DNA of 64,000 nt from positions 62,001 through 126,000 of IMG/VR virus record IMGVR_UViG_3300028735_000003; one strand, given 5' to 3'. This document shows positions 5,536 through 63,477 of this stretch, piece by piece (position 1 is the stretch's first letter; each line of letters begins with the position of its first letter). Both the position numbers and the translations under genes were made by a program. The notes below the pieces were generated by a model. That model had not been told where the DNA came from, did no database searches, and saw nothing but the letters and a program-made list of their open reading frames with translations.

Positions 5536-5718
5536 TTAATTAAGAATTCCAATTTGATACCTTGCGTCAAATTCATCAACGTTCCATCCACATGATTCAA
5601 TGAATGCCTCTACTCGAATAAGAAAGTCATTCAATGTCTCGTCCTTGTCAAGACCTTTCGCATACATCTTTCCAACTTCTAGGTCTACAATCTCAAACGG
5701 AATCTTATTAGAAACCAT
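5536..5718 (-). CDS. hypothetical protein, tandem paralog 1
   Basis: MVSNKIPFEIVDLEVG...; AAGGAG RBS; near-copy of 5822..5995. Confidence 0.7.
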   Translation of the reverse strand: MVSNKIPFEIVDLEVGKMYAKGLDKDETLNDFLIRVEAFIESCGWNVDEFDARYQIGILN

Positions 5719-5821
5719 GATTGATCTCCTTTATAGTTTCTTTATCCGTGTTTCATGATGGGTGCGGTAGATTACAGCACGACTGCAATAGTAGATTATT
5801 TCTTATGAAAAAGTAGGCCAC

Positions 5822-5995
5822 CTACAAAATTTGATACATTGCGTTAAATTCATCGACGTTCCATCCACAGGATTCAATGAATGCCCCTACTCGAATAAGA
5901 AGGTCATTAAACGTCTCGTTCTCGTAGAGACCTTCAGCATACATCCTTCCAACTTCTAGATATACAATTTCAAACGGAATCTTATGTGAAACCAT
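5822..5995 (-). CDS. hypothetical protein, tandem paralog 2 (57 aa, not in ORF track)
   Basis: Manual translation MVSHKIPFEIVYLEVGRMYAEGLYENETFNDLLIRVGAFIESCGWNVDEFNAMYQIL; AAGGAG RBS. Confidence 0.7.
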   Translation of the reverse strand: MVSHKIPFEIVYLEVGRMYAEGLYENETFNDLLIRVGAFIESCGWNVDEFNAMYQIL

Positions 5996-6183
5996 GACTT
6001 CTCTCCTTTATGGTTCCTTTATTCGTGTTTCATGATGGGTATAACAGATTATAGTATGACTGTAACAGCAAATTATTTCTTATGAAAAAGAAAGCACCCA
6101 AAAAACGAAAAAGAAAATACGATGATTACAGTTGAGCCAATTACTTACAATTGAACACACACCTATATATTTTAGTTACCACC

Positions 6184-6708
6184 CTAACTATTATCATAAA
6201 CATCTTCATTGTCTCGATATTCAACAGCGAACAGATCACAAGGATCTCCTTCGCCTGATTCTAGGCTACAACCAATTGAATTCAAGTCAATTGCAGCCTG
6301 TTCGTACCACAATTCATCTTGGTACGCCTCTTTTGAACCAATCCCTCCACAAACAGTACAAGACCTTTCGTATCTGTTTTTAGCAGAAGTACGAATCTTG
6401 GCATGACGAATAGAATACTCACGACCATTCTTGATAGACAAGCGCATAATTCGCTCAAAACGAGCCTTATTGCGCTTTCTGATCCTGGCCGATTTGTGAC
6501 CAGGAACCGTGCCAGTACCCCTACAACATGGACAATAATCAAGATTAGATGAAGCCAATGGCATGTAGTATTTACCGCTAGGCGTCAAAGCGAATACAGT
6601 TCCTAGAAAGGTCGAACGCTTCTGAACATTACCTTCATTCTGCCAATCTTCAGAATCCAAGTCTTTACGAATGTTTTCGAGTTCTTCTTGACTGAAGACA
6701 GTTTCCAT
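6184..6708 (-). CDS. protein with two CxxCxGxG zinc-binding motifs
   Basis: CPCCRGTGTV and CTVCGGIGS; start set at METVFS after GGGAG RBS. Confidence 0.65.
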   Translation of the reverse strand: METVFSQEELENIRKDLDSEDWQNEGNVQKRSTFLGTVFALTPSGKYYMPLASSNLDYCPCCRGTGTVPGHKSARIRKRNKARFERIMRLSIKNGREYSIRHAKIRTSAKNRYERSCTVCGGIGSKEAYQDELWYEQAAIDLNSIGCSLESGEGDPCDLFAVEYRDNEDVYDNS

Positions 6709-6736
6709 AATTAACTCCCGTTTAGTTTTGATACCA

Positions 6737-7261
6737 TTAATCTTCAATCGGGTCCTTAATGCCACATTTCCAACAATATGACTCGCCTTCAGATACCTTA
6801 GCGCCGCAAACCCTACATGGTACATAAATCTTCTTATAAATTGTAGATTGTTGTGTTGTTTGTTGCATAATTGCAGATTTATCAACAGTTGGTGCAATAA
6901 CTCCCATCAAAGAAACGTTTATTGCAACTGTGTTTTTCCTAGATAGATTCAACCAAATCGTATCATACTCTGCAAGAGCATTAAGATACCCTTTAACCGT
7001 CCTCTTGTCAATGTTTGACTTGATAGTCAAATAGTTATTATGCATAACATGAGTGGGATTATGCATTGATTCTTTGTGCATCACATTAAGAATTGTGAGT
7101 GAAGCAGCTTTCAATGCGTCATGCTCCTCTTGATATAGAAAAACATTGCATATTGCACTTTGCAAGTGGTTCTCTTGCAATACCCAAACCATCATGTAAG
7201 TCGTCCCTTCGTCTTTAAACTCATTCGAATTGTGTCTGTGTACCAGTACACATACACACAA
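6737..7261 (-). CDS. hypothetical protein with C-terminal double zinc ribbon (start uncertain)
   Basis: C-terminal CRVCG...CWKCG. Confidence 0.55.
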   Translation of the reverse strand: MCVCVLVHRHNSNEFKDEGTTYMMVWVLQENHLQSAICNVFLYQEEHDALKAASLTILNVMHKESMHNPTHVMHNNYLTIKSNIDKRTVKGYLNALAEYDTIWLNLSRKNTVAINVSLMGVIAPTVDKSAIMQQTTQQSTIYKKIYVPCRVCGAKVSEGESYCWKCGIKDPIED

Positions 7262-7428
7262 ACTCTATTAACTCTATTATATATCTGTAGATCTGTACAA
7301 TACAGTCAAATTACAACAGTAGCTTTTTCAGTCTCAATGAACTAGATAAGAATCTGAAGCGAAGTAAATCCATATCAATTTATTACATTCATAATCATTA
7401 CTTTAATATGTCACAAAAACATGTGACA

Positions 7429-10579: not shown

Positions 10580-11509
10580 TTAGTAAATAGTAGGATCTTC
10601 TGTTCCACATTTCCAGCAAGGTGTTTCACCGGCATTCAAACCTGTCCCACAACACTTGCACGGATGGTCATTCTTGTTCTCGACTACAAAAGTTTCTTGG
10701 TGAAAATAGTTGTTTTCACACTCTTCACAATCGTCACAATCACAATCGTCACCATCACAATAGTCACAATCACAATCGTCACCATCACAATCATTACAAG
10801 AAGAATTCAGCATGTCTGACTGACTCTCATGAACATATACAGACCATTTCGTATGAAACTGCCCAGATTCATCTAGATTGAAAAGGTACCTGTTGATACC
10901 TTTTTCCTCCAACTCTCTGGCAATATCTTCTGGTGAGTCTGTCTGACCAAAATGTAACCCGGTTGTATATGAATTCTTATTCACTCTAATATACCCATAG
11001 TCAGACGGATCAAGATCTTTGATAGGATTTGCCTTCTGCGAATTCCCCTCAAATTCCTCAAAATAAGAGGAGGCGTCTTCTTTTATACATTCAACACACG
11101 ACAAATCACAGTCGATGTCTGAAAAATGATATGAAGGTGTCCAACCATATGAATCAGGTTGAATTCGAATGAGCTTTGAACAGTGATCACAAACTGACCA
11201 CTCATCATCCCACTCGCACTCAATACCCATTTTTTCAAATAGCTTGCCAACTCTATTTGGCAAGTCACTTACAAGCTTTCGCGTATGCGTATTGTAATCA
11301 TAACTGGTGATTGTATTCCAATCACCAGTCGCTACTATTCCGCATGCTGGAGTGTCATATCCAGGTTCAGCATAACCATGATGGTGTAGCCGAATCCCTT
11401 CAATTCTATTCTCAACAGAAATAGAAATAGATTTCGCCATATTCTTGGCGATATTCAGAATACGTTCTGCTCGAAGAGCAATGTTCTTGTTTCGTTCGTC
11501 AGAGTTCAT
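10580..11509 (-). CDS. hypothetical protein with Asp/Cys-rich repeat and C-terminal zinc ribbon
   Basis: 309 aa; CNDCDGDDCDCDYCDGDDCDCDDCEEC; ends CKCCG...CWKCG. Confidence 0.75.
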   Translation of the reverse strand: MNSDERNKNIALRAERILNIAKNMAKSISISVENRIEGIRLHHHGYAEPGYDTPACGIVATGDWNTITSYDYNTHTRKLVSDLPNRVGKLFEKMGIECEWDDEWSVCDHCSKLIRIQPDSYGWTPSYHFSDIDCDLSCVECIKEDASSYFEEFEGNSQKANPIKDLDPSDYGYIRVNKNSYTTGLHFGQTDSPEDIARELEEKGINRYLFNLDESGQFHTKWSVYVHESQSDMLNSSCNDCDGDDCDCDYCDGDDCDCDDCEECENNYFHQETFVVENKNDHPCKCCGTGLNAGETPCWKCGTEDPTIY

Positions 11510-11517
11510 GTTTTCGC

Positions 11518-11898
11518 CTACTCTTTTGTGTGCCCATCAAACCAAGGACCATACAATCTGGTCCTTCTCTTTCCTGCCGCTTTTGTGCAGGTACTTGAAG
11601 AGGTTTCCGGATCACTGCAATGCTCTTTCGCCTCTTCAAGAGTAAGTCCACGCTTTATTGTGATATTCCTGCAACTTTTGAAAAAAACTCGGAAAACTTT
11701 GTATGTTTCCATTGTGTACCCATCAAACCAAGGACCATACAATCTGGTCCTTCTCTTTCCTGCCGCTTTTGTGCAGGTACTTGAAGAGGTTTCCGGATCA
11801 CTGCAATGCTCTTTCGCCTCTTCAAGAGTAAGTCCACGCTTTATTGTGATATTCCTTCTACTCTCGAAAAAAAATCTAACGACTTTGTATGTTTCCAT
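11518..11898 (-). CDS. hypothetical protein made of two fused copies of a 62-aa unit
   Basis: 186-bp direct repeat (offset 11533 vs 11719). Confidence 0.7.
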   Translation of the reverse strand: METYKVVRFFFESRRNITIKRGLTLEEAKEHCSDPETSSSTCTKAAGKRRTRLYGPWFDGYTMETYKVFRVFFKSCRNITIKRGLTLEEAKEHCSDPETSSSTCTKAAGKRRTRLYGPWFDGHTKE

Positions 11899-11911
11899 GT
11901 TTTACCTGCTT

Positions 11912-12355
11912 TTATGGGTGGCAGAAACTATTTGTAGACTTGTTCTTTCGAACATATCGCCGCCAAAAATTATTGATCTTTCGGTCCAAATCAGATTTGT
12001 CCCGAAACTCATATCTACCATTTTCGTCCCAAAATTCAACAAAATCATCTACACTTGGGTGCAACCAAGAATGACAAGATGTCTTGCGATTCTCCTTATT
12101 ACATTTCAATAACTCCATACGAGTCACACCACTAGGTGATTCAGAGTCGAAAAACTTACCATACTGGTATGCAAACGCATGTGTATCATTGGAGTACAAT
12201 GAAACATCCTTATATAGGATGTACGCAATATACGCCCAACGATAACAATCCCCTTTGTTTATCTCTGATTCCATACCAACCATCTCTGGGAAAAATTCAC
12301 GAGTAATCAACTTCCCATCGATTTTACCTGGAAGTTTACCTGGAAGTTTACGCAT
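11912..12355 (-). CDS. hypothetical protein
   Basis: 147 aa; AGGAG RBS. Confidence 0.65.
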   Translation of the reverse strand: MRKLPGKLPGKIDGKLITREFFPEMVGMESEINKGDCYRWAYIAYILYKDVSLYSNDTHAFAYQYGKFFDSESPSGVTRMELLKCNKENRKTSCHSWLHPSVDDFVEFWDENGRYEFRDKSDLDRKINNFWRRYVRKNKSTNSFCHP

Positions 12356-12385
12356 GAATGTTCTCCTAGTTTTATGGTTTTGCTA

Positions 12386-12619
12386 TCAATATGGTTGATA
12401 ACAATTCTTCCATTCTTCAGAAGAATTGTACCAACAATACCACGTTCTATTACCACTTGGAGAAATTGTCTCGGCATACCAATTATGTTTATATACCAGT
12501 TGCAGCATTAGTCCAGATCCACTTGGAAGTGAATCCATACCATGCTGCTTTAGCATCCACTTTAGCCGTAAATGCACATGTGCAATGTGCATAAATAATT
12601 CGATCTGAGAAGAATCCAT
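12386..12619 (-). CDS. hypothetical protein
   Basis: 77 aa; AAGG upstream. Confidence 0.5.
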   Translation of the reverse strand: MDSSQIELFMHIAHVHLRLKWMLKQHGMDSLPSGSGLMLQLVYKHNWYAETISPSGNRTWYCWYNSSEEWKNCYQPY

Positions 12620-12622
12620 ACC

Positions 12623-12844
12623 TTATGTTGCCTTCTCAAATTTAGAGAAATATTCAATAATTCCTGTGCGAATCGCATTCACAGTTGCCGCATTCCACCT
12701 GTAGCTTCTTGCATCATATTCCAGATTTGCATACGCAACTATCAAATTTTGATTCACACCAACCGTAAACAGGAAGTTTCGGACAGCTACTGCCTTCACT
12801 CCCCTTCTCGACGCCAATTGCTCAATTCTCTCTGTTGTCAACAT
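12623..12844 (-). CDS. hypothetical protein
   Basis: 73 aa MLTTERIEQLASRRGVK. Confidence 0.6.
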   Translation of the reverse strand: MLTTERIEQLASRRGVKAVAVRNFLFTVGVNQNLIVAYANLEYDARSYRWNAATVNAIRTGIIEYFSKFEKAT

Positions 12845-12880
12845 TATTATACCTATAAAAGCATAAAAAAGAGAGAATAC

Positions 12881-13282
12881 CTATTCATATCTTGGTCGAA
12901 GCGTTGGACGCGCTGGATGATCTTCCAGGCAGACGATTATATCCATGCCTCCCAAAACTGAATAAATGTTCCCATTACGCCTGTGCCCATACAAATCTTC
13001 TAGATATCTACGAAACCAATCAACCTTTTCAGGATTGATGGGTTGCAACTCATAATCCCACTTGTCCGGACCGGCAACCGAAATTGCCTTTACCGGAATT
13101 GAGGCAACAGGGTTACGGTGGTTGTACCACCAACCACCTTCTTCCGGTCCGCCATAATGCCGGGTAATCTCATATGCATTCACATACATAAGAGATTCTG
13201 CACCGGGTTTTACATACCCTTCAGGCGGATAATCATCATCATATTGATGATCATAATCACAATCACAATCATAATCGCACAT
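12881..13282 (-). CDS. hypothetical protein
   Basis: 133 aa, YGGPEEGGWWY motif; GGAG RBS. Confidence 0.7.
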   Translation of the reverse strand: MCDYDCDCDYDHQYDDDYPPEGYVKPGAESLMYVNAYEITRHYGGPEEGGWWYNHRNPVASIPVKAISVAGPDKWDYELQPINPEKVDWFRRYLEDLYGHRRNGNIYSVLGGMDIIVCLEDHPARPTLRPRYE

Positions 13283-13301
13283 TATCGTTTCTCCATATCA
13301 G

Positions 13302-13352
13302 TGCGGTTCAAAAGTCTACACCTGTTTTACTCCACCGTTCCTGGAAACCAAA
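13302..13352. repeat. 51-bp exact repeat, copy 1 (copy 2 at 14497-14547)
   Basis: TGCGGTTCAAAAGTCTACACCTGTTTTACTCCACCGTTCCTGGAAACCAAA identical at both sites, non-coding. Confidence 0.9.
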
Positions 13353-13436
13353 CAAAACAAACATGTATAGACCCGTGAGGCGAACCCCAAAATGGCGGGA
13401 ACCCAATCCAATAGTCCCCCTTTGCATTAGACGTGG

Positions 13437-13602
13437 ATACCATAATCCAAACAAAGTTTGGACTGGTCTAGTCCCATACACACAATCTCTTATGTGTATG
13501 GGGACTGGTTTTACAAGAAAACAACATGATTCCAATACTAAACCAGCAAATATACCGGAATCTAAGTCTATGACAATGTTCAGAATGGTCCTGCCCATAC
13601 TG
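13437..13602. repeat. about 165-bp near-identical structured repeat, copy 1 (copy 2 at 13871-14036)
   Basis: Direct comparison, about 2 differences in the non-coding part; contains several hairpins. Confidence 0.9.
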
Positions 13603-13768
13603 AAACATTGTCTCTTACAACAACAAGAATCTCATCCATGTCCTCAACATGGATATTTTTTCCGCGCATGTATTCAAGGACATCCTCTTTCTTCTGGAGA
13701 CAAAGACTGTCAGGAGCCTTGCATGAAACCGTAATATCGCCGTCAAACGATACACAGATAAGTACCAT
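13580..13768 (-). CDS. 62-aa hypothetical protein, paralog 1 of 3
   Basis: MVLICVSFDGDITVSCKAPDSL...DEILVVVRDNVSVWAGPF; AAGGAG RBS. Confidence 0.65.
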   Translation of the reverse strand: MVLICVSFDGDITVSCKAPDSLCLQKKEDVLEYMRGKNIHVEDMDEILVVVRDNVSVWAGPF

Positions 13769-14013
13769 GATCGTTCTCCTTCCACGCTGAAAACTAGACA
13801 TATATGTATAGACCAGTGGGGAGACCCCCAAAATGGCGGAGACTAAATCTAGTATCACTTTTATACATAAATACCATAATCCAAACAAAGTTTGGACGGG
13901 TCTAGTCCCATACACACAATCTCTTATGTGTATGGGGACTGGTTTTACAAGAAAACAACATGATTCCAATACTAAACCAGCAAATATACCGGAATCTAAG
14001 TCTATAACAATGT

Positions 14014-14205
14014 TCAGAATGGTCTTGTCCATACTGTCACATTGTCATCCACAATAACAAGGATTTCATCAAGGTCATCCGTACTTACGCCTCTTTCTGC
14101 ACAGAGGAATTGAATTACATCCTCCTTTTTCTGGAAACGGAGGCTATACGGAGCCTTACACGAAAAGGTAGCATTATGGTCAAAAGACACACCGACGATA
14201 ACCAT
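14014..14205 (-). CDS. 63-aa hypothetical protein, paralog 2 of 3
   Basis: ...SCKAPYSL...DEILVIVDDNVTVWTRPF; AGGAG RBS. Confidence 0.65.
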   Translation of the reverse strand: MVIVGVSFDHNATFSCKAPYSLRFQKKEDVIQFLCAERGVSTDDLDEILVIVDDNVTVWTRPF

Positions 14206-14231
14206 GACAACTCTCCTATTGTTTGTAAAGT

Positions 14232-14426
14232 TCAGAATGGTCCTGACAATACTGTAATATTGTCGTTGACAATGACCAGAATCTCATCCGTGTCTTCCAG
14301 TGTAACATTATTTGTACGCAAATACTCAAGGATAGCCTCTTTCTTCTGAAGATCCTGAAGACAAAGACTGTCCGTAGCTTTGCATGAAACTGTGGCATCG
14401 CCATCAAGCTCATAAATGAGAACCAT
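14232..14426 (-). CDS. 64-aa hypothetical protein, paralog 3 of 3
   Basis: ...SCKATDSL...DEILVIVNDNITVLSGPF; AGGAG RBS. Confidence 0.65.
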   Translation of the reverse strand: MVLIYELDGDATVSCKATDSLCLQDLQKKEAILEYLRTNNVTLEDTDEILVIVNDNITVLSGPF

Positions 14427-14682
14427 AATATCTCTCCTAGTTGGAATATAAACAAATGTTTGGAAACAGGTTCGACCGCCTATATGAGCTTTTCATTGCG
14501 GTTCAAAAGTCTACACCTGTTTTACTCCACCGTTCCTGGAAACCAAATATATTGTCTTTCAAATTGGAAGGAACACGGTCAGGCTCGATATCGATTCGAC
14601 CGTTTCCCACGTATATTATACGTGTGCATTCTCCCAAGATCACGCATGCAAAATCTTGGGAATAAGCCTATCACATTCCTAG

Positions 14683-14745
14683 TGGGACCAGCCGGATTCG
14701 AACCGACATTTATTCCTTTACCCTAATCATTAGGGCAATGGTCCC
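14683..14745 (-). ncRNA. tRNA-like element lacking an anticodon arm
   Basis: Perfect acceptor GGGACCA/TGGTCCC+A, D-like arm GCCC...GGGT, T arm GTCGG-TTCGAAT-CCGGC; only 12 unpaired nt (AAAGGAATAAAT) between D and T arms. Confidence 0.7.
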
Positions 14746-14824
14746 AAAAGTACATGAACCTATAAGCTTCGGAAGAAAGGGGAATGAAACGGTTCTTATT
14801 CCATTCCCACACACCTACTATGTA

Positions 14825-15205
14825 CTACTTATCTTCCCGCTGGTCGGACCAGCGGGACACTCCGCCACCCTTTCCCTTTCCAATATGGAAAAGGGCGCCG
14901 GATTCACGGGCTCCGGCACGGTCCCGAACATAATTCTGAACTTTTTCAGAAAGAATTCGGAAGTTTTCCGGCTGAACGTTCAGCCTTTGGAGCGAATAGT
15001 TCACCAGGGCAGGCATATTGATCCTAGCCCCAGGGAACTGATCGAAGACAGCATTGACCGCGGCTCCAACCGCTTCATTTTCAGTTTCCATTTCAGCTTG
15101 AAAAGCCAAAAGGTCCTTGGCAAACTTCGCACAAGTAGCATCGAGGTCGATGCTGCCGTTCCCAGCACGCACAACGTAAGTATTGAGGTTGATCGCAGTA
15201 TTCAT
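14825..15205 (-). CDS. hypothetical protein
   Basis: Start set at MNTAINLNTY after GAAGGAG; GC-rich codon usage; GKGKGGGV motif. Confidence 0.75.
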   Translation of the reverse strand: MNTAINLNTYVVRAGNGSIDLDATCAKFAKDLLAFQAEMETENEAVGAAVNAVFDQFPGARINMPALVNYSLQRLNVQPENFRILSEKVQNYVRDRAGARESGALFHIGKGKGGGVSRWSDQREDK

Positions 15206-15430
15206 GACGAACTCCTTCTCTACGATGAATCTGGCGCTTGCCATGCTGAATCTTGACTCAATTCAAGATTCATTGACTCGCGCCTTCCTAGCACTTCCGC
15301 CCGAACGCCGTTACATGATGGGAACGTCAACCCGTTCCCGTTGCCTTGCCTTGCCTTGCGTTCGTCGCACCTTGGCGTTGTCTATGTTTCATGATGGGAT
15401 CGTTATGCGCCGCATATAATAAGGTTTCGT

Positions 15431-15746
15431 AGCAAAAACTATGCCAACTATACTTCGGCACGATTCTTGCTACGCACGAACACATGACCAATTTGGCATA
15501 TACTTTGCTTCTTTGCAATATACATGCCGTTTTGTATGGCACGATGTTTGCACTTTGCAAACGTTATGCCACCATATATCGTGACACTACATTGCCATAT
15601 ATTGTCATATATTGCCAACAAATATGGCACGAAGTTTGCACCTTTGCAAATGTTATGCCATCAATCGTGAAACTACATTGCTATATATTGTCATATAGTG
15701 TCACGCAAACATGGCACGACGTTTGCACTTTGCAAACGCTATGCCA
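15431..15746. promoter_or_regulatory. sigma54 -24/-12 cluster 1 (10 sites, both strands; includes an 87-88 bp tandem repeat)
   Basis: GG-N10-GC 16-mers at 15431(-), 15456(+), 15494(+), 15514(-), 15537(+), 15556(-), 15625(+), 15645(-), 15712(+), 15731(-), e.g. TGGCACGATGTTTGCA. Confidence 0.85.
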
Positions 15747-16206
15747 CATGATAATTCACCTCTTGTGAAAAGAGGTGCTGGTAAGTGCGGGCGAATAAAA
15801 ATCCGCCATAGTTTATCGTGAACTAGATAACGAAAAACTCTTACTGAGAGAAAGAGGTTCAATCCTCTTCTTCACCCCAGTCCTCGTTTTTCCAGTTTTT
15901 CATAGAATCCTTATGAGCTTTACTCATGCGTCGGGGCTTTTGTGCTTCGCCCCTTGCGACTGAAAGCGCAAAAAGATTGCGCCGACGTTTACGCGGTAAT
16001 TCGATTCTAAAAGACCGATCGCCTTTATGAGTAGCCATTTATCTACTCCTTTTCAAACAAGATTGGGACGCTAAAGCGCCCCAACACTACACCTTACTTC
16101 AAGGAAGTGACGGTTACCAGAACGAACCACAAACTCACTCAAATCGATCTTTCTCATGGGCTTACCCTTTCCTTCAAATCCTGTTTCATGATGGGCTGAT
16201 GTACAA

Positions 16207-16791
16207 TCAGCCCCGCGAGAACGCCACCTTGGATTGACGCACCTTCACGCCGAATCCAAGGTTGCCGTTAGACGGATGGCTCACTTTATGCACAGCCATC
16301 CGCGGCTTCTCAAAAAGACGAGAAAACGATTCATCGCGGCGAATAATATCCGTCGCGTGTTCGGGGTTAGCACACCTGTTCGAATGTACTTCCCCGAAAT
16401 AATCGGGGGGAGACTCAAACAGTCGGCGGTCAATCCAATCAATCGCCCTTTGATAAAGGGCAAACTCCTTTTCCAAAGCTTTACCCTGTTCATCACGGGC
16501 AACCTCCCCCGTGCCACGACGAATCGTGGCAACAAAGGGATATTCCACCTTTCTCGGCTTGTTCATGCCCGTATGGGCACTAGCCAAGATATGATCAAGA
16601 ACGACCCTTTTCAATTCAGTCAAAGCTGGCGTGGGAAGCAACTCCCCACTTTCCAGCTTCTTTACAATTGAAGCCGTCGCGTAAGACACTTCCGAATCCG
16701 AAGCGAGAAGGTACTCACGATGCGCTTGAAAAAAAGCAAGCGCACTAACCTTTGGAGAATTGGCTTTGTGCAGAAGCCTACGCGGTGTCAT
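16207..16791 (-). CDS. hypothetical protein
   Basis: 194 aa, GGAAGGGAG RBS, junction motif upstream. Confidence 0.7.
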   Translation of the reverse strand: MTPRRLLHKANSPKVSALAFFQAHREYLLASDSEVSYATASIVKKLESGELLPTPALTELKRVVLDHILASAHTGMNKPRKVEYPFVATIRRGTGEVARDEQGKALEKEFALYQRAIDWIDRRLFESPPDYFGEVHSNRCANPEHATDIIRRDESFSRLFEKPRMAVHKVSHPSNGNLGFGVKVRQSKVAFSRG

Positions 16792-16843
16792 GGCTAACTC
16801 CCTTCCTTTCCCTCTATCCCACTTCCGTGTTTAATGATGGGAA

Positions 16844-17026
16844 CTACTTGCTCCCACCAAAGAGCAGTCCGACGATCATGACCAGTGCACTAGCGCCGAC
16901 CGACCATCGGACAGATACTCCTTCAAAGTACTGTGCCATGATGGGAAACTGTGGGATCAGGAAAAAATTGATGGCACAAAAAATGCATGCGGACAAAATC
17001 GCCCAAAGTACCAACAGCTTCCACAT
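16844..17026 (-). CDS. small two-helix membrane protein
   Basis: MWKLLVLWAIL...; GGAGG RBS; two hydrophobic segments. Confidence 0.65.
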   Translation of the reverse strand: MWKLLVLWAILSACIFCAINFFLIPQFPIMAQYFEGVSVRWSVGASALVMIVGLLFGGSK

Positions 17027-17196
17027 ATCCGCCTCCAACTGTTTTATGATGGGTAGAACGTTCTACCCTTATTGCAACAGCACATTGACGTTCACACCTT
17101 ACTAGGTGTTTCCTAACGCCCGTCAAGTTGCGTTGCACCACCCACAATGTATTGTTTCATGATGGGATCGTTGCAATACATATAAAAGATATAACT

Positions 17197-17437
17197 TGGC
17201 ATGCTTATTGCAGACGGTTCTAACGTAGCACGCGAATTGCTACGTTGCAAAGCTCATGCCATCATATTCACGTGCAAGTATCGTACCATATACAAGTTAT
17301 GCAAGTATCATACCATATGCAAATATCATGCCAAATAATTATTCATTAGTTTCATTGATATGATAAACTTGGATATAATGAACTTTTCGTGAAAAACTTG
17401 GCTGGTATATCGTTTGCACCTTGCAAATTCAATGCCA
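17197..17437. promoter_or_regulatory. sigma54 -24/-12 cluster 2 (7 sites plus 1 variant)
   Basis: 17197(+), 17246(-), 17273(-), 17300(-), 17318(-), 17403(+), 17422(-); AG-N10-GC variant at 17226(+). Confidence 0.85.
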
Positions 17438-17505
17438 ACCTGAACAAAGAAACACAAAACTCCCGCTCATCAATTAGATGGCGAGATCAATTAGTAACGG
17501 GTTAG

Positions 17506-17841
17506 TTACACGTTGCGCTTACTCAACCAAGCAGCGCAACTGCCTTCACGGATGAGACGAACAATCTCATCCGTCAGAGGTGACCCGACTTCGGTATGAT
17601 ATCCTTGCATGGCAAGGATATCAACCTCCCGAGACGTAATCTCGGGAGAATACGTATTCCTTTCGAATTCGCGCAAGGCTTCACGCGCCTTGCGCGCGTT
17701 TTCCCGCGTTCCAATAAGCGCGGACTCAGCCCTTTCAAGGGCTTTCCTCGCCCGAGCTACGGCTTCTCGGGCGAACGCCTCATCCTCGGCTGCCTGCACG
17801 CAGGCAGCCTTGAGCCCTTCTAGAGTAGGTCTTATATTCAT
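17506..17841 (-). CDS. coiled-coil hypothetical protein
   Basis: Start set at MNIRPTL; Ala/Arg/Glu-rich helix. Confidence 0.65.
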   Translation of the reverse strand: MNIRPTLEGLKAACVQAAEDEAFAREAVARARKALERAESALIGTRENARKAREALREFERNTYSPEITSREVDILAMQGYHTEVGSPLTDEIVRLIREGSCAAWLSKRNV

Positions 17842-17922
17842 TTTATGCCTTCTTCGGTGTTGTGTTAGCGGCACCTTGACGCCAACTATGTTTCATGATG
17901 GGACGCGAACACCTGTTTTTCA

Positions 17923-18021
17923 TGGCACACACTTTGCTACTTTGCAAACAATATGCCTACCAAAACACAATGCAAGCAATTGACTTGACAATTGCTTGCA
18001 CTTACTAGCACGCTTCTTGCT
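17923..18021. promoter_or_regulatory. sigma54 cluster 3 (2 sites plus 1 variant) and a 12-bp inverted repeat
   Basis: 17923(+) TGGCACACACTTTGCT, 17943(-) AGGCATATTGTTTGCA, variant 18006(+); TGCAAGCAATTG-N6-CAATTGCTTGCA at 17971-18000. Confidence 0.75.
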
Positions 18022-18830
18022 TATCCTCCGCCCCCGCACGCTTCGTAGCGCGCTTCAAGCTCCGACCAGTTGTCGAAGTCAAGAATTCTTCTAATCTCGC
18101 GAGCCCTTGCATGCTCAAGGGCAGCTTTCATGGCGAAAACTCGCCATTCAGTTTCGGCGACGGTAGCATCATCTACCGTGCCTTCGGCGCGCAATTCACG
18201 CGCCAATTCCCGCTTGACACGCGCATCGATGACGAATTCATCGCGCGCATGTTCCGCGGTTACAAGCGCCGATACAAGTGACCGACGCATCTTGCTGGCG
18301 CGGCTTCCCACGCCAGCCGATCCAAAGACAACTGCCCTACCATGCCGGTTGGCATGGTCATCGGGCACAACATTAGGGTGACGAATCTCGAACATAATGA
18401 TCCGGCAGACGTCAAGCAAGGTACCTGTCGCCATATCTGGCATGAGGTATGCCACGCGATGGTCCTTAGTTTGACGAAGCCAAGCAATAAAGCCGTTACA
18501 ATAAGCGCGCAATTCCGTTGAAGTAGGATTCCGCCGTTGCGGCATCCCCTTTTCGTCACAATAAGCAATCTTTCCGTTGATGGCGGAATGGAATTCATCC
18601 GGTGACAACGGAATTGCGGAAGGGAATTCAGCATTAGCTGAATTCCAACCAGACTTAGACTTACGTGTCCCTTTACAATCAGAACACGACTTAGACTTCA
18701 CGGAACGCGGCTTAGTTGTAGTCGCGTCCGCGGACGAATCTGGAACCATTGCGGAGATAGAATTCTCCGCAATGTAGGTCGAAGCCAATCCTGCGAGAAA
18801 ACTATCAACAATAGACCTAGACATGGCCAA
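18021..18830 (-). CDS. hypothetical protein
   Basis: 269 aa, AAGGGAG RBS, GC-rich codons. Confidence 0.7.
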   Translation of the reverse strand: MAMSRSIVDSFLAGLASTYIAENSISAMVPDSSADATTTKPRSVKSKSCSDCKGTRKSKSGWNSANAEFPSAIPLSPDEFHSAINGKIAYCDEKGMPQRRNPTSTELRAYCNGFIAWLRQTKDHRVAYLMPDMATGTLLDVCRIIMFEIRHPNVVPDDHANRHGRAVVFGSAGVGSRASKMRRSLVSALVTAEHARDEFVIDARVKRELARELRAEGTVDDATVAETEWRVFAMKAALEHARAREIRRILDFDNWSELEARYEACGGGG

Positions 18831-18930
18831 CTCCCTTCTTTCGGGGGTATTCCCTCACTGTTGCGCCACAATTGTTTCATGATGGGTTTACATTATAGGT
18901 AGGTTGAATCCAACAATAATGAAACGAAGA

Positions 18931-19064
18931 CGGTATAGCAGTTGCTATTAGCAAAAACCATACCTGTTCTAAAACTGAATTGGTACTAATCATGCTATAG
19001 CAAAAATAATGCCACCTCTCAAAGAGACTCGGCACAACAATTGCTCCTTACAATATTCATGCCA
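18931..19064. promoter_or_regulatory. sigma54 cluster 4 (5 sites plus 1 variant)
   Basis: 18931(+), 18950(-), 18981(+), 18999(-), 19030(+); GG-N10-GT variant at 19049(-). Confidence 0.8.
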
Positions 19065-19347
19065 ACTACTTGATATTCAATATGTTTTTCACCGGACGAC
19101 AATCCCTAACCGAACTAATACTATAAAAAAAAGATAAAAAGTAGTTTTTGGTATAGTAAAAACTATATACTTTACGGACTTTCGTTATGTTCCTGCCGTC
19201 CGACAATTCCAGAACATATTAGAATCTGAAAATTATAACATTACTGTATATTACAAATAAAAAAAATATTCCAGAATATAAAAGAAAAAGAAAAATAATG
19301 AATAACAGTATAATGAGAAATAAAAATAAAAACTGGATTATTGATTT

Positions 19348-19482
19348 TGGCATAGGAAATGCTACTTGCAAAGAGCGTACCATCGTCGATTGAACTATTG
19401 GACGATGGCATGAGTATTGCTAATTGCAAGGAATATGCCAGTGAAGATTCTGAACAAGAGCCGCGTTGGCACGCGATTTGCC
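19348..19482. promoter_or_regulatory. sigma54 cluster 5 (5 sites)
   Basis: 19348(+), 19367(-), 19406(+), 19425(-), 19467(+) TGGCACGCGATTTGCC. Confidence 0.8.
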
Positions 19483-19822: not shown

Positions 19823-20446
19823 ATGTACAGAACAAAGATATTGATATTTGTGGTAGGTATATTGTTAAATATAATATGTGGATGTCGGGACGAGAATCCG
19901 AGGTATCATTATATAGAGAGGGAGAAAGTAATTTACGAAGAAGTGATAATGCCAGTCTACTTAGATGTATTATTTAGTGATAAAGAGGAGACAGAGATAG
20001 AGCTTGGGTTAGACAGATGGAACAAGACACTTAATGGGTATATGAGGTTTGAGTATGCTGGTGAAATGGATATGGAGATATGGGCATTGAAGAAGATAGT
20101 AAATGGTGAGGCATATGGAATTTTCAGACTAAGTGAGGGGGATGATATATTAAAGAGGGCAGACGAGAGTAGGGAAGAGGGGGAGAAGGTATTAGGATTT
20201 GTAAATAAAGTAGGTGGCAGTTATATGTATTTAGCCCCTACTAGGATGAATGAAGGGGACATATATTACATAGTAATGCATGAGGCAGGGCATTTACTAG
20301 GGGCACGACATACGAGTGAAGGTATAATGAGGGGGAGTTATATAAGGGGGTACAATGGATTATGTATAGACAAGAGTGCGATAGAGCAAATAATAATTGG
20401 TAGGAATTGGGAATTAGATAGGATTAACTATTGTGTTAAAGATTAA
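19823..20446 (+). CDS. metzincin (matrixin/M10-like) zinc metallopeptidase, putative lipoprotein
   Basis: HEAGHLLGARH zinc motif followed by GIM Met-turn; N-terminal hydrophobic signal ending ICGC. Confidence 0.8.
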   Translation: MYRTKILIFVVGILLNIICGCRDENPRYHYIEREKVIYEEVIMPVYLDVLFSDKEETEIELGLDRWNKTLNGYMRFEYAGEMDMEIWALKKIVNGEAYGIFRLSEGDDILKRADESREEGEKVLGFVNKVGGSYMYLAPTRMNEGDIYYIVMHEAGHLLGARHTSEGIMRGSYIRGYNGLCIDKSAIEQIIIGRNWELDRINYCVKD

Positions 20447-21529
20447 TGAGGGGACATTTAATATTGGCAGAGAATTCTACAAAGATAATCTGAGATTTTA
20501 CATTACATTAAATTTATTATAATTATTTACATAAAACTTAGTTATCGTATATAGTGATTTTACGGAATTTACATCTAGTATAGATCTGGATAGGGAAATA
20601 TAATCTGATTATATTAGAATCTTGATACATGTATAGAAACAATTATCTAATGGATTTATGGATACTGAATTATTTTTCGGTAAGTGAATGATTACAGAAT
20701 GTAGTTATTACAGAATTTTAGGTTAAAAAAAATTAAAATTTAGCTCATATAATACGTCACAACATATTTAGTAGAAGTTATCAATTTTAAAGTTATAATT
20801 TTCACTACATAGTTTTATTATTAATGAAGGAGACATTTATTTTAAGTATGACCAGCACTTAAGCTTATTGGTTGACACACGGACTTATTTTACGTTCCAC
20901 TTTTAGCTGGAGCAGAGGTACTGAGGCAGAGGTAAAGTTATTGAGGCTATTCTTGGCAGAAATGACATTAGGTATTCATTATTTTGTGTTGAGACGGCGA
21001 ACATACAGTTATCGCAATTCGTTTGATTATTTATGTTAGGCTCTAAATTTGGATTATAGTATGTGCAAATGATGAATGATGATAGTATTACAATCAATTT
21101 AATATTAATGTTTGTAGTATTCGATTAATTTTGATACTGGGCATTTATTGGCAAAAAACATAAATATATGCAATGATTATATATTATGGAGAGCGACTTG
21201 ATTGCAGATACAGGTATAATATGGTTACAGAATTTGGAAATAATGAAGTGAATATGGGGCAGTTATTATTTTGGTGAGTGCCGCCCGAAACTCCCTTTGG
21301 TTCATATGATATGTTACAACATGTCACGGCACATCATACAGGGCTAAGATTTAATGAAAGGTTATAGTAATTGGGGTTAAAGTTATGTATTTCAAATTAG
21401 AATATATCTAGGTATTATAATTTTTACTATAGTTTTAGAGTAACGGAGTATAAGTTTAGGCAGTATTGTAGTCGAACGGTGTTTGCAATTTTGTGGGCGA
21501 AGGGAGTTATTTTAGAATTTTGATTTATT

Positions 21530-21850
21530 TTAAGTTTCGATATAACCAGATATTGTTTTTTTATTGAAACACGAGGATAGTTTTAAGTTTAGCCATTGCA
21601 TTTTTATATGCAGGTGCAAGATGAAGCGTGTTGGATATTTGATTTATTAAGTTATTTTTCTGCATCTGGGAATTGAGGATTGATAATTCTAGTAAAGTTA
21701 TGTTGATAATTTGAATAGAGGCAGTAAACATACAGTTACAGTTATCGGAATTAATGCGGATAATTTTCTTTATGTATATATTTTATACAATTTTTTGTAA
21801 TTGTATTTTACAAACTGGGCAGATCATAACATAGTTAGGTACAGTTTTAA
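21530..21850 (-). pseudogene. decayed copy of 23659..24027
   Basis: MICPVCK start and YQHNFTRIINPQFPDAEK segment with stops and frameshifts. Confidence 0.65.
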
Positions 21851-21854
21851 TTTT

Positions 21855-22262
21855 TGTTGTATATTATTTGGGTTAATATTTGGGATACCATTTATAGTAA
21901 TCATTTTAATATGAGTTGTATATTATTTTGTTGTATATTATATGTGTTTATATTTATGGCACCATTTATAGTAATGGTATTAGTCGAAGCCGTTGATATT
22001 TCTTTCTTATATTTTGCTGACCATATTTTAGTTTTATTTATGTCATAGTAGAAGCGGACGTAATATTGATATTGCAATATAGTATAGTGGACCACATTTG
22101 GAATATTCTACCATCACCGTAGTACATTACACTACATTTATCACATAATATTATTAAATCCAATTGATTATATGTTGATGTTGGGCGTAGATCCGAATTA
22201 TAATATGGGCAGATAATGATTGATGATTTATCTATATTTGAATTACAGTATGGGCAAATCAT
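21855..22262 (-). pseudogene. frameshifted copy of the MICPYCN gene
   Basis: N-half in ORF 22038..22262, C-half (YYVRFYYDINKTKIWSAKY...) in ORF 21901..22095 in another frame. Confidence 0.7.
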
Positions 22263-22968
22263 AATAGCGTTGCAATCAATTTAGTATTAAATTTAATTAA
22301 AGTTATAGCAGCGGACATACAATTAACACAAGTAAATTTGTTTTTGTTTTACATTGGGTTTATATTGGGGATATTATTGATAATAACGGTTTTAGGATAA
22401 GTTATTTGTATTTCTTCTATACATTTTAATGACCATATTTCAGTTTTATTTCTATTATAATAGAAGCAGACGTAGTATTTATATGGCATAATGAGTGTTC
22501 AGGGGATTCGATTAAAATTTAAATATGCTTAGCAACATATTACGGCACATCATACAGTGCCAAGATTTAATGAAAGGTTATTGTAATTATGGTTGAAGTT
22601 ATCGACATTAAGTTATAATATATTTAGGTATTATAATTTTTACTACAAGTATAAGTTTAGACGTGGTTGTAGGCGAACGGCGTTACATTATTGGCAATTG
22701 TTTTTATAGATGCTGGGAATGCGAGTTATATATTGGTTTTATTGAAACACTAGAATAGTTTTAAGTTTGGCTATTGCATTTCATTTATTTTTCTGTTTCA
22801 GGGAATTGAGTACCATAAATCTAGTATTGTAGTTTTTAGTATGAATAGATAATAGAGACAGAAGACATATATTTATCACAATTAATACAGGCAATTTTCT
22901 TTATGTATAGATTTTCTATAATTTTTGTAGTTGTATTTTACAAAGTTGTATTTTACAAAATGGTCAGA

Positions 22969-23280
22969 TTATAACATAGTTAGGTACAGTTTTAATTTTT
23001 GTTGTATATTATGTGGATTTATATTTAGGATACCATTTATAGTAATAGCATTAGTCGAAGCCGTTGATATTTCTTCCCTATATTTTACTGACCATATTTC
23101 AGTTTTATTTATGTCATAATGGAAGCAAACCAAGTGTTTAAATGGTATAATAGTGGTCCAGATTTGAAATATTCTACCGTTATGATTGTAAAACACATTA
23201 CATTTATCGCATAATATCATTAAATACAATTGATGATTTATGTTAGATTCTAAGATTGAATTACAGTATGGGCAAATCAT
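22969..23280 (-). CDS. CPxC zinc-finger family protein (type X)
   Basis: MICPYCN...LCDKC...QQKLKLYLTML. Confidence 0.7.
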   Translation of the reverse strand: MICPYCNSILESNINHQLYLMILCDKCNVFYNHNGRIFQIWTTIIPFKHLVCFHYDINKTEIWSVKYREEISTASTNAITINGILNINPHNIQQKLKLYLTML

Positions 23281-25860: not shown

Positions 25861-27669
25861 ATGCCTTTATTTTCAATCATCAATACGCCGGTGGAATTTT
25901 TACAATCGAAATCATGGATTACGAACAAATTTTTTGTTAATTTTGGATACATTGAAGATGGTCCTGGAACAGATTTAAAGTTCTCAAACAGTGCTATGGT
26001 TACTACGCCGATAGAACAGAATCCGTCATTAAAACAATATTTTAAGCCAATTAGCGATCAATACAACCTAAGTTCTTGTGTTGCGAATGCTGTTGCTGAT
26101 TGTTTTGAAGCACAGATGGCTCATAGGAAGGGTTGTGATCCATCTAATATAGAAGATATTTCCAGATTATTTATTTATTGGAACGCCAGGAATCTTTCCA
26201 ATCCACCTACAAGTAACATAGATAAGGGGTCACAGATCAGGTTAGCTTTTGACAGCATGGCACGTTACGGAGCGCCGAGTGAGAAGACATATCCATATGA
26301 TTTATCGAATGTGAACGTAAGACCACCTATTATTGCATATCGCGAAGCTATTAAACATAGGATTAGTAAGTTTTACAGAATAGACGTGGGAGGGATTAAT
26401 AGAATAGTTCAAATCAAGCAAGCATTATCTGCTGGTAATCCAGTTGTATTTGGGACTAAAGTAGCGGAGAGTTTTAAGTATGTAAACAGTGACGAAGTAG
26501 TGGTTAATCCTGGTGGTGGGTGGATAGGTGGACATGCTATGTGTATAGTGGGGTGGTCTGAAGACAAGCAAGCATTTGAAGTTAGAAATTCTTGGGGATG
26601 TTATGATGACAAGACAGAGATTTTGACAAATGATGGTTGGAAATTATTTAAAGATGTAACGTATAATGATAAATTTGCGACATTAAACTCTGATACGCAT
26701 CATTTGGAATTTCAAAAAGCATCAAAAATACATGAGTATGATTTTAGCGGCAAACTTTATTATTTCAAAGATGGACATATAGATCTTGCAGTTACTCCAA
26801 ATCACAGAATGTACGTAGGAGACTATAAAGACAAAGACGACACATCATGGAGTATTAAAAGAGCTGATGAAATTTCAAAGCCTATTTATTTTAAAAAAGA
26901 CGTTATAAACATTGTTCCGGACGTAAGTCACTTTAATATTGAAGACAAAACAGTTGAAGCTGATACGTGGTTAGAATTTATGGGTTATTTTCTATCATGT
27001 GGATACAATTGTGAAAAACATAATAAAACAACTATTTACGAGACAATTGGGTTAAATAAAGATAAGATTAATCATTGTTTGAAAAAACTTCCATTTAAAT
27101 TTTCTAAAGACAAAAAATCTATAAATCACAAAAGTATAAATAGATGGCATTATACAACGAAAGAATTATATAAATATCTTTCTATCTTTGGAAAAGAGGA
27201 TGAAAAATTCATACCACGCTATCTTTTAGAATTATCTCGTCGTCAAAGTAAGATTTTACTAGACGCTATGATGCTTGGTAATGGCACAAAAGTCAAAGGA
27301 AAATATATTTATCATACTTCATCCAAACAATTAGCAGATGATATTCAGGAGTTAGCTTTGCGCTGTAATTTATCGGCAGATATAAGAATTACAAACAGAG
27401 TTAGATCAAAAAATAATAAACACGCAGAATATAAGATAAAAATTAAAACTACAAAAACTATGTCACAATTCAATAATGAACCGATTCAGAAGTCATATAC
27501 TGGTAAAGTTTATTGTGTGACAGTACCAAATGGTCTATTATATGTTAGGAGAAATGGTAAAGCAGTATGGTGTGGAAATTCTGATTGGGGAGTTAATGGA
27601 TATTGTTGGATGGATAAGAACTATATAGCATCTAGCATAACTTCAGACATTTGGGTACCAACTGTTTAA
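25861..27669 (+). CDS. papain-like (C1) cysteine peptidase containing an intein
   Basis: QYNLSSCVANA (catalytic Cys), GGHAMCIVGW (His), VRNSWG (Asn), then intein, then SDWGVNGYCWM. Confidence 0.9.
   Translation: MPLFSIINTPVEFLQSKSWITNKFFVNFGYIEDGPGTDLKFSNSAMVTTPIEQNPSLKQYFKPISDQYNLSSCVANAVADCFEAQMAHRKGCDPSNIEDISRLFIYWNARNLSNPPTSNIDKGSQIRLAFDSMARYGAPSEKTYPYDLSNVNVRPPIIAYREAIKHRISKFYRIDVGGINRIVQIKQALSAGNPVVFGTKVAESFKYVNSDEVVVNPGGGWIGGHAMCIVGWSEDKQAFEVRNSWGCYDDKTEILTNDGWKLFKDVTYNDKFATLNSDTHHLEFQKASKIHEYDFSGKLYYFKDGHIDLAVTPNHRMYVGDYKDKDDTSWSIKRADEISKPIYFKKDVINIVPDVSHFNIEDKTVEADTWLEFMGYFLSCGYNCEKHNKTTIYETIGLNKDKINHCLKKLPFKFSKDKKSINHKSINRWHYTTKELYKYLSIFGKEDEKFIPRYLLELSRRQSKILLDAMMLGNGTKVKGKYIYHTSSKQLADDIQELALRCNLSADIRITNRVRSKNNKHAEYKIKIKTTKTMSQFNNEPIQKSYTGKVYCVTVPNGLLYVRRNGKAVWCGNSDWGVNGYCWMDKNYIASSITSDIWVPTV
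26599..27579 (+). mobile_element. intein (327 aa) with degenerate LAGLIDADG domain
   Basis: Begins CYDDKTEILT, block B VTPNH, ends VYCVTVPNGLLYVRRNGKAVWCGN, +1 Ser. Confidence 0.9.
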
Positions 27670-32133: not shown

Positions 32134-33225
32134 TTATGATTTCGCGAAATATCTTAAATACGCCAAAATAAACTCTTGTATATCACCATCTAAAACACGA
32201 TTACAGTTGTTATGTTCAAAATCAGTTCTATGATCTTTTACTAATGAATAAGGTGAAAGAGTATAAGTTCTAATCTGGCTACCAAATTTGGCATCCATTT
32301 GAGACTCGATGAACTTATCTTTTTCAGATTGTCTTTTCTTCTTTTCGATATCATATAATTTTGATTTTAACATCTTCAGCGCAGTTTTCTTATTAGAAAG
32401 TTGATCGCGCTCGGTTCTAACCAATATATTAATGCCTGTAGGTAAATGTTTTAATCTAATTGCGCTAGCAACCTTGTTTACATTTTGACCGCCAGAGCCG
32501 GAAGATGTTTGTGCGGTGATTTCAATATCTTTATCTTCTATTTTAATATCGATAGTATCTTCGATATCTGGTGTAACAGATACTGCTGCAAAGGAAGTAT
32601 GACGGGCATCTCCTGCATTAAAAGGAGAATTACGGATTAAACGATGAACTCCATTTTCTCCTTTAAGGAAGCCATAAGCATATGGACCATCTATTCTATA
32701 AGATACGGAATCTGTACAAATAGAACTATGTTCTTCTGACGGTTTATTATCTAATATTTCCACTTTAAAATTATAAGCATCTGCCCAACGCAAGTACATT
32801 CTGGACATCATTGTAACCCAATTAGCGGCTTCTAGACCGCCAGCGCCCGCATTAATTGTCAGTATAGCCGGGCTATTAGCCATTGGATCTGTCATCATTT
32901 GACGAAACTCTAAGGCTAACAATTCATCATAAATCTTTGCAATATGCTCTTGTTGTTCCGGCAATTCTTCTGGGAGTTCTTTTGCAATTTCTGAATAGAA
33001 ATCGATGTCATCAGACATTTACTGTATTTTTGTGACGAAATCAGTTAGGCGCTGGCGTTCTTTCATAAGGGCGCCAGCTTTCTTTGCATCACTCCAAATA
33101 TTATTATTTGATATCTGTAAATCAATTTCGTCGATTCTAGCTCTATATTTACTAAAATCGGTCATACTATTTATAGACTTTATCTTCTCAACACAGTATG
33201 CAATTAATTGTTGTGCTGTTTCCAT
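32134..33225 (-). CDS. prfB: peptide chain release factor 2, interrupted by an in-frame TAA at codon 69 (33019-33021)
   Basis: SPF anticodon mimic (LIRNSPF), GGQ (SGSGGQNVNK); N-terminal 68 aa (IWSDAKKAGALMKER) in the same frame; junction CAG TAA ATG. Confidence 0.9.
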
Positions 33226-57302: not shown

Positions 57303-58547
<1,245 letters not shown>

Positions 58548-63463: not shown

Positions 63464-63477
63464 GATTATCTCTTTAC

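Follow-up and report, generated by a model that had tools for sequence, protein, structure and literature searches.

Face-to-face sigma-54-type sites arrayed in a huge phage genome, and a paired element shared with many other phages

Introduction

Why would a huge phage carry about 30 near-consensus sites for a bacterial sigma factor within 4 kb? The sites are of the sigma-54 (RpoN) type and lie in a 64,000-nucleotide stretch of IMG/VR record IMGVR_UViG_3300028735_000003 (positions 62,001 to 126,000 of that record). We call this whole stretch the window and use its own numbering. The phage contig is 353,765 bp long, with a G+C content (GC) of about 30%. A sequence match placed the window at 62004-126003 of this contig, with 100% identity. 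Sigma-54 is the one bacterial sigma factor known to bind its promoters silently and to need an ATPase to fire. Its promoter consensus is TGGCACG-N4-TTGCW, as in glnAp2, nifH, and pspA. To our knowledge, phage use of sigma-54 is considered rare. An earlier note on this DNA had read the sites as -24/-12 elements, and it had proposed either a sponge that titrates the host holoenzyme or a redundant RNA polymerase (RNAP) loading platform for early genes.

Here we describe the number, geometry, and placement of these sites and their occurrence in other phages. The paired element is far more general than the window alone showed. We read the arrays as docking sites for sigma-54 holoenzyme, and from the sequence evidence we give this reading a probability of roughly 0.65 to 0.7.

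Results

Number and geometry of the sites

A scan for GGYAY-N5-WTGC found 34 matches in the 64 kb, versus 2.76 ± 1.65 (maximum, 7) in 100 dinucleotide-preserving shuffles. Site positions were also taken from separate regular-expression scans. Twenty-nine matches lie in five noncoding clusters, which agrees with the earlier count of 29 sites plus three near-matches. The earlier note had seen no comparable site elsewhere in the window. This held for 33 of the 34 matches, which fall within 15431-19482. One match lies elsewhere. Four of the 33 are weaker matches inside open reading frames (ORFs) (16710, 16973, and 18439/18440). The array has about 4 sites per kb, versus 0.006 strict sites per kb in unrelated loci.

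The GG and GC dinucleotides are exactly 10 bp apart in all 29 cluster sites. The site logo is T(.82) G G C(.82) A(.94) Y R N3 T(.61) T(.85) T G C W(.88), or TGGCAY-R-N4-TTGCW. Positions 7 (R) and 16 (W) were not forced by the search, and they too match the extended consensus, both in the window and in the 129 distinct dyads described below.

The sites are mostly arranged head to head. In ten such adjacencies both arms pass the filter, and the 16-mers are 3-4 bp apart. Two or three further pairs have a near-match arm, with AG for GG (17225, 18006) or GT for GC (19049). Together they account for the 12 inverted pairs counted earlier. We refer to a head-to-head pair as a dyad. Unpaired direct copies are present at 17273, 17300, and 17318, as first noticed. 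The arms of the window pairs are identical at 14 of 45 non-consensus positions by hand count. This is the chance level, in keeping with the earlier remark that the arms differ outside the consensus. The clusters are as follows.

15431..15746: cluster 1, 10 sites; back-to-back pair 15431-15446(-)/15456-15471(+); dyads 15494-15529, 15537-15571, 15625-15660, and 15712-15746
17197..17437: cluster 2; site 17197-17212(+); dyad 17225-17240(+, near-match)/17246-17261(-); direct gene-sense sites 17273-17288, 17300-17315, and 17318-17333(-); dyad 17403-17437
17923..18021: cluster 3; dyad 17923-17958; near-match site 18006-18021(+), separated from the dyad by the terminator hairpin of the upstream gene
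18931..19064: cluster 4; dyad 18931-18965; weaker dyad 18981-19014; site 19030-19045(+) with near-match partner 19049-19064(-)
19348..19482: cluster 5; dyads 19348-19382 and 19406-19440; single site 19467-19482(+) toward the rightward gene 19823-20446

The last three dyads of cluster 1 sit in a tandem repeat of about 87 bp. By orientation, 15 of the 29 cluster sites face a gene and 14 are antisense. Among the unpaired window sites, about five are co-oriented with the next gene and two are opposite (hand count). A split by arm type (gene-facing TGGCAT...TTGCA, antisense TGGCAC...TTGCT; p ~0.02) was not used; it comes partly from three tandem copies and is absent in the relatives. The TTGCA-N3-TGCAA centre of three dyads resembles a LuxO-type site. 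We dropped this lead because the centre spacing varies in other phages. Rfam had no match in the arrays, and no DnaA, IHF, NifA, or NtrC sites were found there.

The dyad across IMG/VR

We searched IMG/VR for TGGCAY-N5-TTGC-N2-6-GCAA-N5-RTGCCA. The exact spacing, with N5 arms, was found at no fewer than 120 loci with a GC of 30-68%. Wrong-spacing controls gave one locus with N4 arms and two loci with N6 arms, and a centre gap of 9-13 instead of 2-6 gave 28 loci. By sequence, the -24/-12 identity assigned in the earlier note is well supported by the exact consensus, by this dependence on spacing, and by the persistence of the element across phages. A sub-pattern with both arms TGGCAC and centre N4 occurs at 76 loci collection-wide and at 12 among the 120 matches listed. 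Extrapolation from this ratio gives about 760 contigs with close dyads.

Counts given below for listed loci refer to these 120 matches. In 1.0 Mb of listed loci, with the ascertaining dyads masked, TGGCA-N6-TTGC occurs 287 times, versus about 14 at other spacings. Beyond the masked dyads, neighbouring sites stand head to head in another 108 cases, 1-5 bp apart, and 79% of the sites are outside ORFs of at least 90 amino acids (aa). In one podophage-like family (80-86% identity), the consensus positions are invariant and the N positions are variable. The same element is present in unrelated podophage-like contigs and in contigs of 30-68% GC, and the dyad-bearing phages range from 40-kb podophage-like genomes to 350-kb phages. 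The sequence identity, geometry, placement, and conservation of the sites are thus direct observations.

Inverted repeats could instead work as hairpins in RNA or DNA, serving as terminators, processing sites, or cruciforms. Several window dyads do fold into RNA hairpins of -15 to -20 kcal/mol (z, -4 to -7). However, others are near their shuffles (z, -0.3 to -0.6), and the stability stems from the consensus blocks. The dyads have no U-tracts, and the canonical terminators are separate from them. Over the 129 distinct dyads of the listed loci, the arms agree at positions 6-8 in 230 cases, versus 301 ± 12.7 by chance. Arms that are less alike than chance argue against hairpin or homodimer symmetry as the conserved feature, and they suggest selection against perfect palindromes among the dyads. 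In addition, the motif is kept by sites that have no partner. We consider a hairpin role very improbable.

Layout of the array module

The minus strand of the array module is a series of terminator-bounded units. Each consists of an array, then the 14-nucleotide (nt) motif CCCATCATGAAACA, and then genes. Arrays are at the 5' edge of all four units. Unit 1 has clusters 5 and 4, the motif, gene A, and a terminator. Unit 2 has cluster 3, the motif, and gene B. Unit 3 has cluster 2, the motif, and genes C, D, and E, with the inner genes preceded by the motif alone. Unit 4 has cluster 1, the motif, gene F, and a terminator. The features are as follows.

19065..19347: AT-rich noncoding spacer of about 280 bp (16-32% GC) between clusters 4 and 5; divergent junction of the leftward module and the rightward metallopeptidase-like gene (19823-20446)
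18021..18830, minus: gene A, about 267 aa, without a known family; it opens the leftward module; the homologue in relative L193 is similar at the N terminus
17969..18002, minus: intrinsic terminator, hairpin and T-run, 3' of gene A
17506..17841, minus: gene B, about 111 aa, rich in Glu and Ala; a unit by itself behind cluster 3
15859..17026, minus: unit behind cluster 2, with genes C and D, a small ORF, and gene E
16844-17026, minus: gene C, small membrane protein
16207-16791, minus: gene D, 194 aa; homologues in relatives L193 and L192
15859-16038, minus: gene E, basic, 59 aa
14825..15205, minus: gene F; unit behind cluster 1
16062-16085 and 14780-14808, minus: further terminators, the latter ending unit 4
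18873..18886, 17889-17902, 17153-17166, 17040-17053, 16828-16841, 16182-16195, 15385-15398, 15309-15322, 6026-6039, and 5749-5762, minus: copies of CCCATCATGAAACA

The motif CCCATCATGAAACA has 13 matches, versus 0.71 expected, and lies 11-100 nt 5' of start codons. It is probably a phage-specific promoter, for a phage-encoded polymerase, or an RNA-processing signal. Promoters of the sigma-70 type are no more frequent in the module than expected (10 versus 11 ± 3.1). Pfam and PHROGs searches with the module proteins gave no function and no recognisable family, and no solved structure matched gene A or gene D in a sequence search. A DNA similarity search of the array region against cultured phages also gave no match.

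GC is 41-50% across 11-19 kb of the window (the array module, 11000-19080), versus about 30% genome-wide. In relative L014, the array module has 46-48% GC versus 34-40% in the remainder, and the contrast was also noted for L193. The same contrast in L014 indicates that the elevated GC is a conserved property of the module and not a recent import.

Two side observations concern this part of the window. A 277-bp tandem duplication at 5551-6090 (1.9 copies, 85% identity) has the per-gene motif and a small-gene start in each copy. Directly after the gene F terminator, at 14683-14745 (minus), Rfam calls a tRNA at 33.8 bits, barely over the gathering score; ARAGORN was negative.

Arrays in related huge phages

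Three to four huge-phage relatives were found: L193 (which is L009 and is identical to L194), L192, and L014. Gene D and the metallopeptidase-like gene have homologues there, as do genes that lie at 25-40 kb in the window. A search of related phages had been advised earlier, and arrays of the same type, mostly dyads, do occur at the syntenic place in L193/L194, L192, and L014. An AT-rich stretch adjoins the arrays in L193 and L192 too.

The per-gene motif is phage specific. It is CCCATCATGAAACA in the window and CCCATCGCCTAACGG, CCCAGCGACTAAGTTTTG, and CCTAGCGACTAACAC in the relatives, whereas the sigma-54-type consensus is constant across the same phages. A constant consensus beside a diverging motif suggests that the sites have a conserved reader, most simply a host factor. 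The reader is thus probably conserved and host derived. Promoters of phage-encoded polymerases co-vary with their enzyme, and the divergence of the per-gene motif follows the same pattern. The CGACT...TTTTG version recalls the promoters of the T7 group.

In L193, all four sites upstream of the gene D homologue face the gene. Two of these four are tandem copies, and their predicted +1 coincides with the base at which the per-gene motif begins. In L193, two copies of the motif are directly 3' of tRNA ends.

Surroundings of the dyads in other phages

In about 45% of the 120 matches listed, the dyads are in the divergent region 5' of small-terminase, large-terminase, and SU10-type portal genes. 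Arm-type orientation relative to the terminase gene followed no clear rule. Unpaired sites of the listed loci are co-oriented with the next gene in 187 cases and opposite in 130, counted with ORFs of at least 90 aa.

The terminase and portal setting is one reason to ask whether the sites belong to another phage or host DNA-binding protein, as origin iterons or a dimeric operator would. The match to the sigma-54 consensus would then be convergent or coincidental. The conserved blocks of the 34-36 bp dyad, four in number, are spaced by about one helical turn, a pattern seen with multimeric binders. Arrays also adjoin AT-rich, repeat-bearing noncoding DNA at divergent junctions, an origin-like setting, in the window and in L193, L192, and L116. 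However, the spacer from TTGC to GCAA is not fixed (N3, N4, N5, and N6 in 17, 65, 26, and 21 dyads), and the low agreement of the arms at positions 6-8 speaks against a symmetric dimer. Moreover, unpaired and tandem sites retain the 16-mer, and every unforced position fits the sigma-54 consensus. Within flanks of up to 10 kb, we found no protein family common to the huge-phage and podophage-like loci. A reader other than sigma-54 is unlikely, though of the alternatives it is the one that we take most seriously.

Strong sigma-70-like promoters within 400 bp of the dyads of listed loci fire away from the dyad in 133 cases and toward it in 25, with about 38 expected each way; kinship among the loci inflates these counts. 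Such a layout would suit a regulator or insulator. A holoenzyme parked in a closed complex could be a roadblock or competitor that separates units or modulates adjacent promoters. The window arrays are flanked by one unit's terminator and by the leader of the unit that follows, and dyad symmetry suits a two-way barrier. Sigma-54 holoenzyme is also known to bind in a transcriptionally inactive state (PMC4591121). However, genuine terminators already divide the units, ten consecutive sites are too many for a barrier, and the loci behind the promoter counts are not mutually independent. We think this role improbable.

Four listed dyad loci are Pseudomonas aeruginosa Pakpunaviruses (MAG1, C2-10_Ab02, and relatives). 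In PAK_P4, 11 bp separate the dyad at 55823-55856 from the -35 hexamer of promoter_03, an annotated promoter, and this position would also suit an insulator. This promoter drives as16, a noncoding RNA seen by RNA-seq. Further PAK_P4 sites are at 55671 and at 67.5-68.5 kb. RNA-seq placed the early region of this phage at gp080-gp124 (PMC5563952), and both site regions are within it or at its end. The cultured relatives that we found have Pseudomonas, Vibrio, and Alphaproteobacteria as hosts. Bacteria of these three groups are known to have rpoN.

Some loci show additional features. In the unrelated phage L037 (2050-4600), each early-gene upstream region has two tandem sites, two 15-bp palindromes CTGCCATTTTGGCAG, and a consensus sigma-70 promoter. 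A conserved G-run, GGGGGAGGGGG, is 3' of the dyads in the podophage-like family L012/L028/L090/L094/L115/L117/L118 and in L116. In L116 (9780-10200), an origin-like AT-rich stretch with CTAAGTAAAAT repeats follows the dyads. The T5-like Vibrio phage D419 (L121, OZ195672.1) is a weak match because several of its -12 blocks read TTGAC. Its positions 6200-7400 are noncoding DNA beside DNA-transfer (pre-early) genes, with several DnaA boxes and a few sigma-54-type sites; the tiny hypothetical genes annotated there are probably spurious.

Search for an activator or an rpoN gene

The earlier note had reported no rpoN or activator gene in the window. This was borne out, because six-frame translation of the window contained neither a GAFTGA nor an RpoN-box motif; the same was true of the 120 listed loci. 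The recommended search of the rest of the genome had the same outcome. Across IMG/VR, including the whole 354-kb contig, a GHExGAFTGA coding sequence (the canonical signature only) was found on 31 contigs, none of them array bearing. The flanks of these 31 contigs have practically no sigma-54-type sites. An RRTVAKYRE coding sequence, likewise the canonical signature only, was found on six contigs IMG/VR-wide, and neither this contig nor its relatives were among them.

The lack of an encoded activator, judged by canonical signatures, would be expected of a pure decoy or sponge. Such sites would hold host sigma-54 or its holoenzyme without making transcripts, draw sigma-54 away from host promoters as the genome replicates, and silence the host responses that depend on it. 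The density of the sites is in line with this. About 30 sites are packed into 4 kb, whereas 135 sigma-54 sites were mapped in the whole E. coli genome, where the holoenzyme is bound in an inactive state (PMC4591121). The balance of sense and antisense sites (15 versus 14) and a head-to-head layout that would defeat its own firing also fit a sponge. However, a 2-4 bp gap should admit only one holoenzyme, so that half of the sites would be wasted. The tight gap suggests that the pair works as one unit, and a plain sponge needs no such constraint. In addition, many phages have only 2-9 sites, and unpaired sites show an orientation bias. Arrays stand at the 5' boundaries of units and, in other phages, upstream of outward-firing promoters, so the sponge of the earlier note is not specifically supported. 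It is one live option, not the best supported one, and we rate it about as improbable as the insulator. The other earlier proposal, an RNAP loading platform for early genes, comes closer to the layout; in it, too, binding is a prediction.

Other features of the genome

The phage encodes a release-factor-like protein, a thymidylate synthase, a GMP reductase, an M23 peptidase, and collagen-repeat proteins, and it carries an IS200/IS605 element. An alternative genetic code as the cause of the low ORF density was unsupported, and the standard code fits. Further features of the window are as follows.

894-2439: IS200/IS605 element; TnpA (894-1310) is intact, and the TnpB-like gene is split by an in-frame stop (ORFs 1276-1734 and 1789-2439)
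20450-23000: about 2.5 kb in which no ORF reaches 90 aa; the GC skew is strongly positive, and there are several short tandem repeats
25861-27669, plus: 602-aa ORF with a weak LAGLIDADG-type homing-endonuclease match close to the C terminus
32134-33018, minus: 294-aa peptide-chain release factor homologue with PCRF and RF-1 domains; the ORFs are still best described by the standard code
57303-58547 and 62477-63580: collagen triple-helix repeat proteins, adjoining a Kelch-motif protein and a family-2 glycosyltransferase; this neighbourhood may be a fibre or decoration module

Discussion

We suggest that the clusters are recognition elements for the host sigma-54 holoenzyme, mostly face to face, in the form TGGCAY-N5-TTGCW, 2-4 bp, WGCAA-N5-RTGCCA. 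The clusters would serve as upstream control regions for the transcription units of the module, in which GC is high and the genes are small and of early type. The host holoenzyme would dock there in a stable closed complex. With a gap of only about 2-5 bp between the two -12 ends, a dyad would take one holoenzyme at a time, in either orientation. This step draws on the structures of closed complexes. Gene-facing arms would be activator-dependent promoters. The repeat copies and the opposite-facing arms would raise occupancy and make each region a landing pad for the polymerase, with sigma-54 titration as a side effect. The host would supply the ATPase activator, or an unrecognised phage factor would serve in its place. 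The motif CCCATCATGAAACA probably serves a separate phage-specific transcription or RNA-processing system on the same genes.

This control-region role is favoured because arrays stand at every unit start, there is no sigma-70 excess, unpaired sites lean toward genes, and there is a phage precedent. It is more tentative than docking itself. That the dyads are control regions of an early-type module, with promoters in their gene-facing arms and a landing pad in the whole, seems possible to us, at somewhat less than even odds. The full chain, in which sigma-54 binds, each dyad holds a single holoenzyme, and the promoters fire, is placed at a similar level.

Several observations weigh against docking sites that fire. 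Fourteen of the 29 sites point antisense, into the terminator of the upstream unit, and up to 10 sites per intergenic region is far beyond the need of a promoter. The per-gene motif before every window gene could be the real promoter. No canonical activator signature or RpoN-box is on the contig or on any array-bearing contig examined, and no enhancer or activator site of the NtrC, NifA, or IHF type was recognised in the arrays. The host could not be read from the IS200 transposase, whose best match, 71% to a Peribacteria genome-bin contig, is uninformative. In other phages, neighbour genes have consensus sigma-70 promoters with the sigma-54-type sites upstream of those, and in L037 the tandem sites 5' of such promoters point away from the genes. 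Sites upstream of ordinary sigma-70 promoters could be regulatory or architectural elements as well as promoters.

A broader proposal is that face-to-face sigma-54 dyads are a widespread, undescribed phage cis-element. Phages would use them to tap the host sigma-54 polymerase while encoding no activator of their own. They would be fired unconventionally, without an activator or by a phage factor, or they would be parked to control early transcription and the host sigma-54 regulon. We hold this to be rather doubtful. Our literature search found no description of phage sigma-54 site arrays or dyads and no paper joining sigma-54 and jumbo phages. If the dyads do bind holoenzyme, many phages use or neutralise the sigma-54 polymerase, including relatives of therapeutic P. 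aeruginosa phages. The questions would then be how an activator-less phage fires or exploits the closed complex, whether host activators let phages sense stress in the host, and whether titration shuts down the sigma-54 regulons for envelope, motility, and stress repair. All of this is directly testable in P. aeruginosa, since the dyad occurs in PAK_P4-type phages.

The sites share with classical sigma-54 promoters the two-block consensus, the GG-N10-GC spacing, and an intergenic position. Many are also upstream of genes, with 15 of the 29 cluster sites facing them. However, classical promoters are single and come with an enhancer and a dedicated AAA+ activator, whereas here up to 10 sites, mostly face to face, share one intergenic region.

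The sole case of phage sigma-54 use found in our literature search is Pseudomonas phage YuA, the development of which is described as strictly dependent on host sigma-54 (Ceyssens et al. 2008, as cited in PMC5053324 and PMC10914365). The likeness is a phage that relies on host sigma-54 and has an annotated -24/-12 consensus. However, the annotated -24/-12 promoters in the YuA record are three single weak matches in the late structural region, whereas the elements described here are consensus dyad arrays in early-type or noncoding DNA.

Opposed promoters are also known for sigma-70. In symmetry-driven bidirectional promoters, two promoters face each other at a fixed short distance and share the region where melting starts. 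That case rests on a near-palindromic -10 hexamer, whereas each dyad has two full predicted -24/-12 elements that face each other. Dense clusters of sites in noncoding DNA are familiar from E. coli datA, which titrates DnaA, and from the injection-stop repeats of phage T5. The arrays resemble them as dense host-factor sites in noncoding DNA, with a predicted sigma holoenzyme as the factor. Finally, promoters A1-A3 of phage T7 are stacked host-polymerase promoters before genes that also carry phage-polymerase promoters. The arrays are like them in heading an early module that has a phage-specific signal of its own. However, the T7 promoters are sigma-70 type, unidirectional, and activator free.

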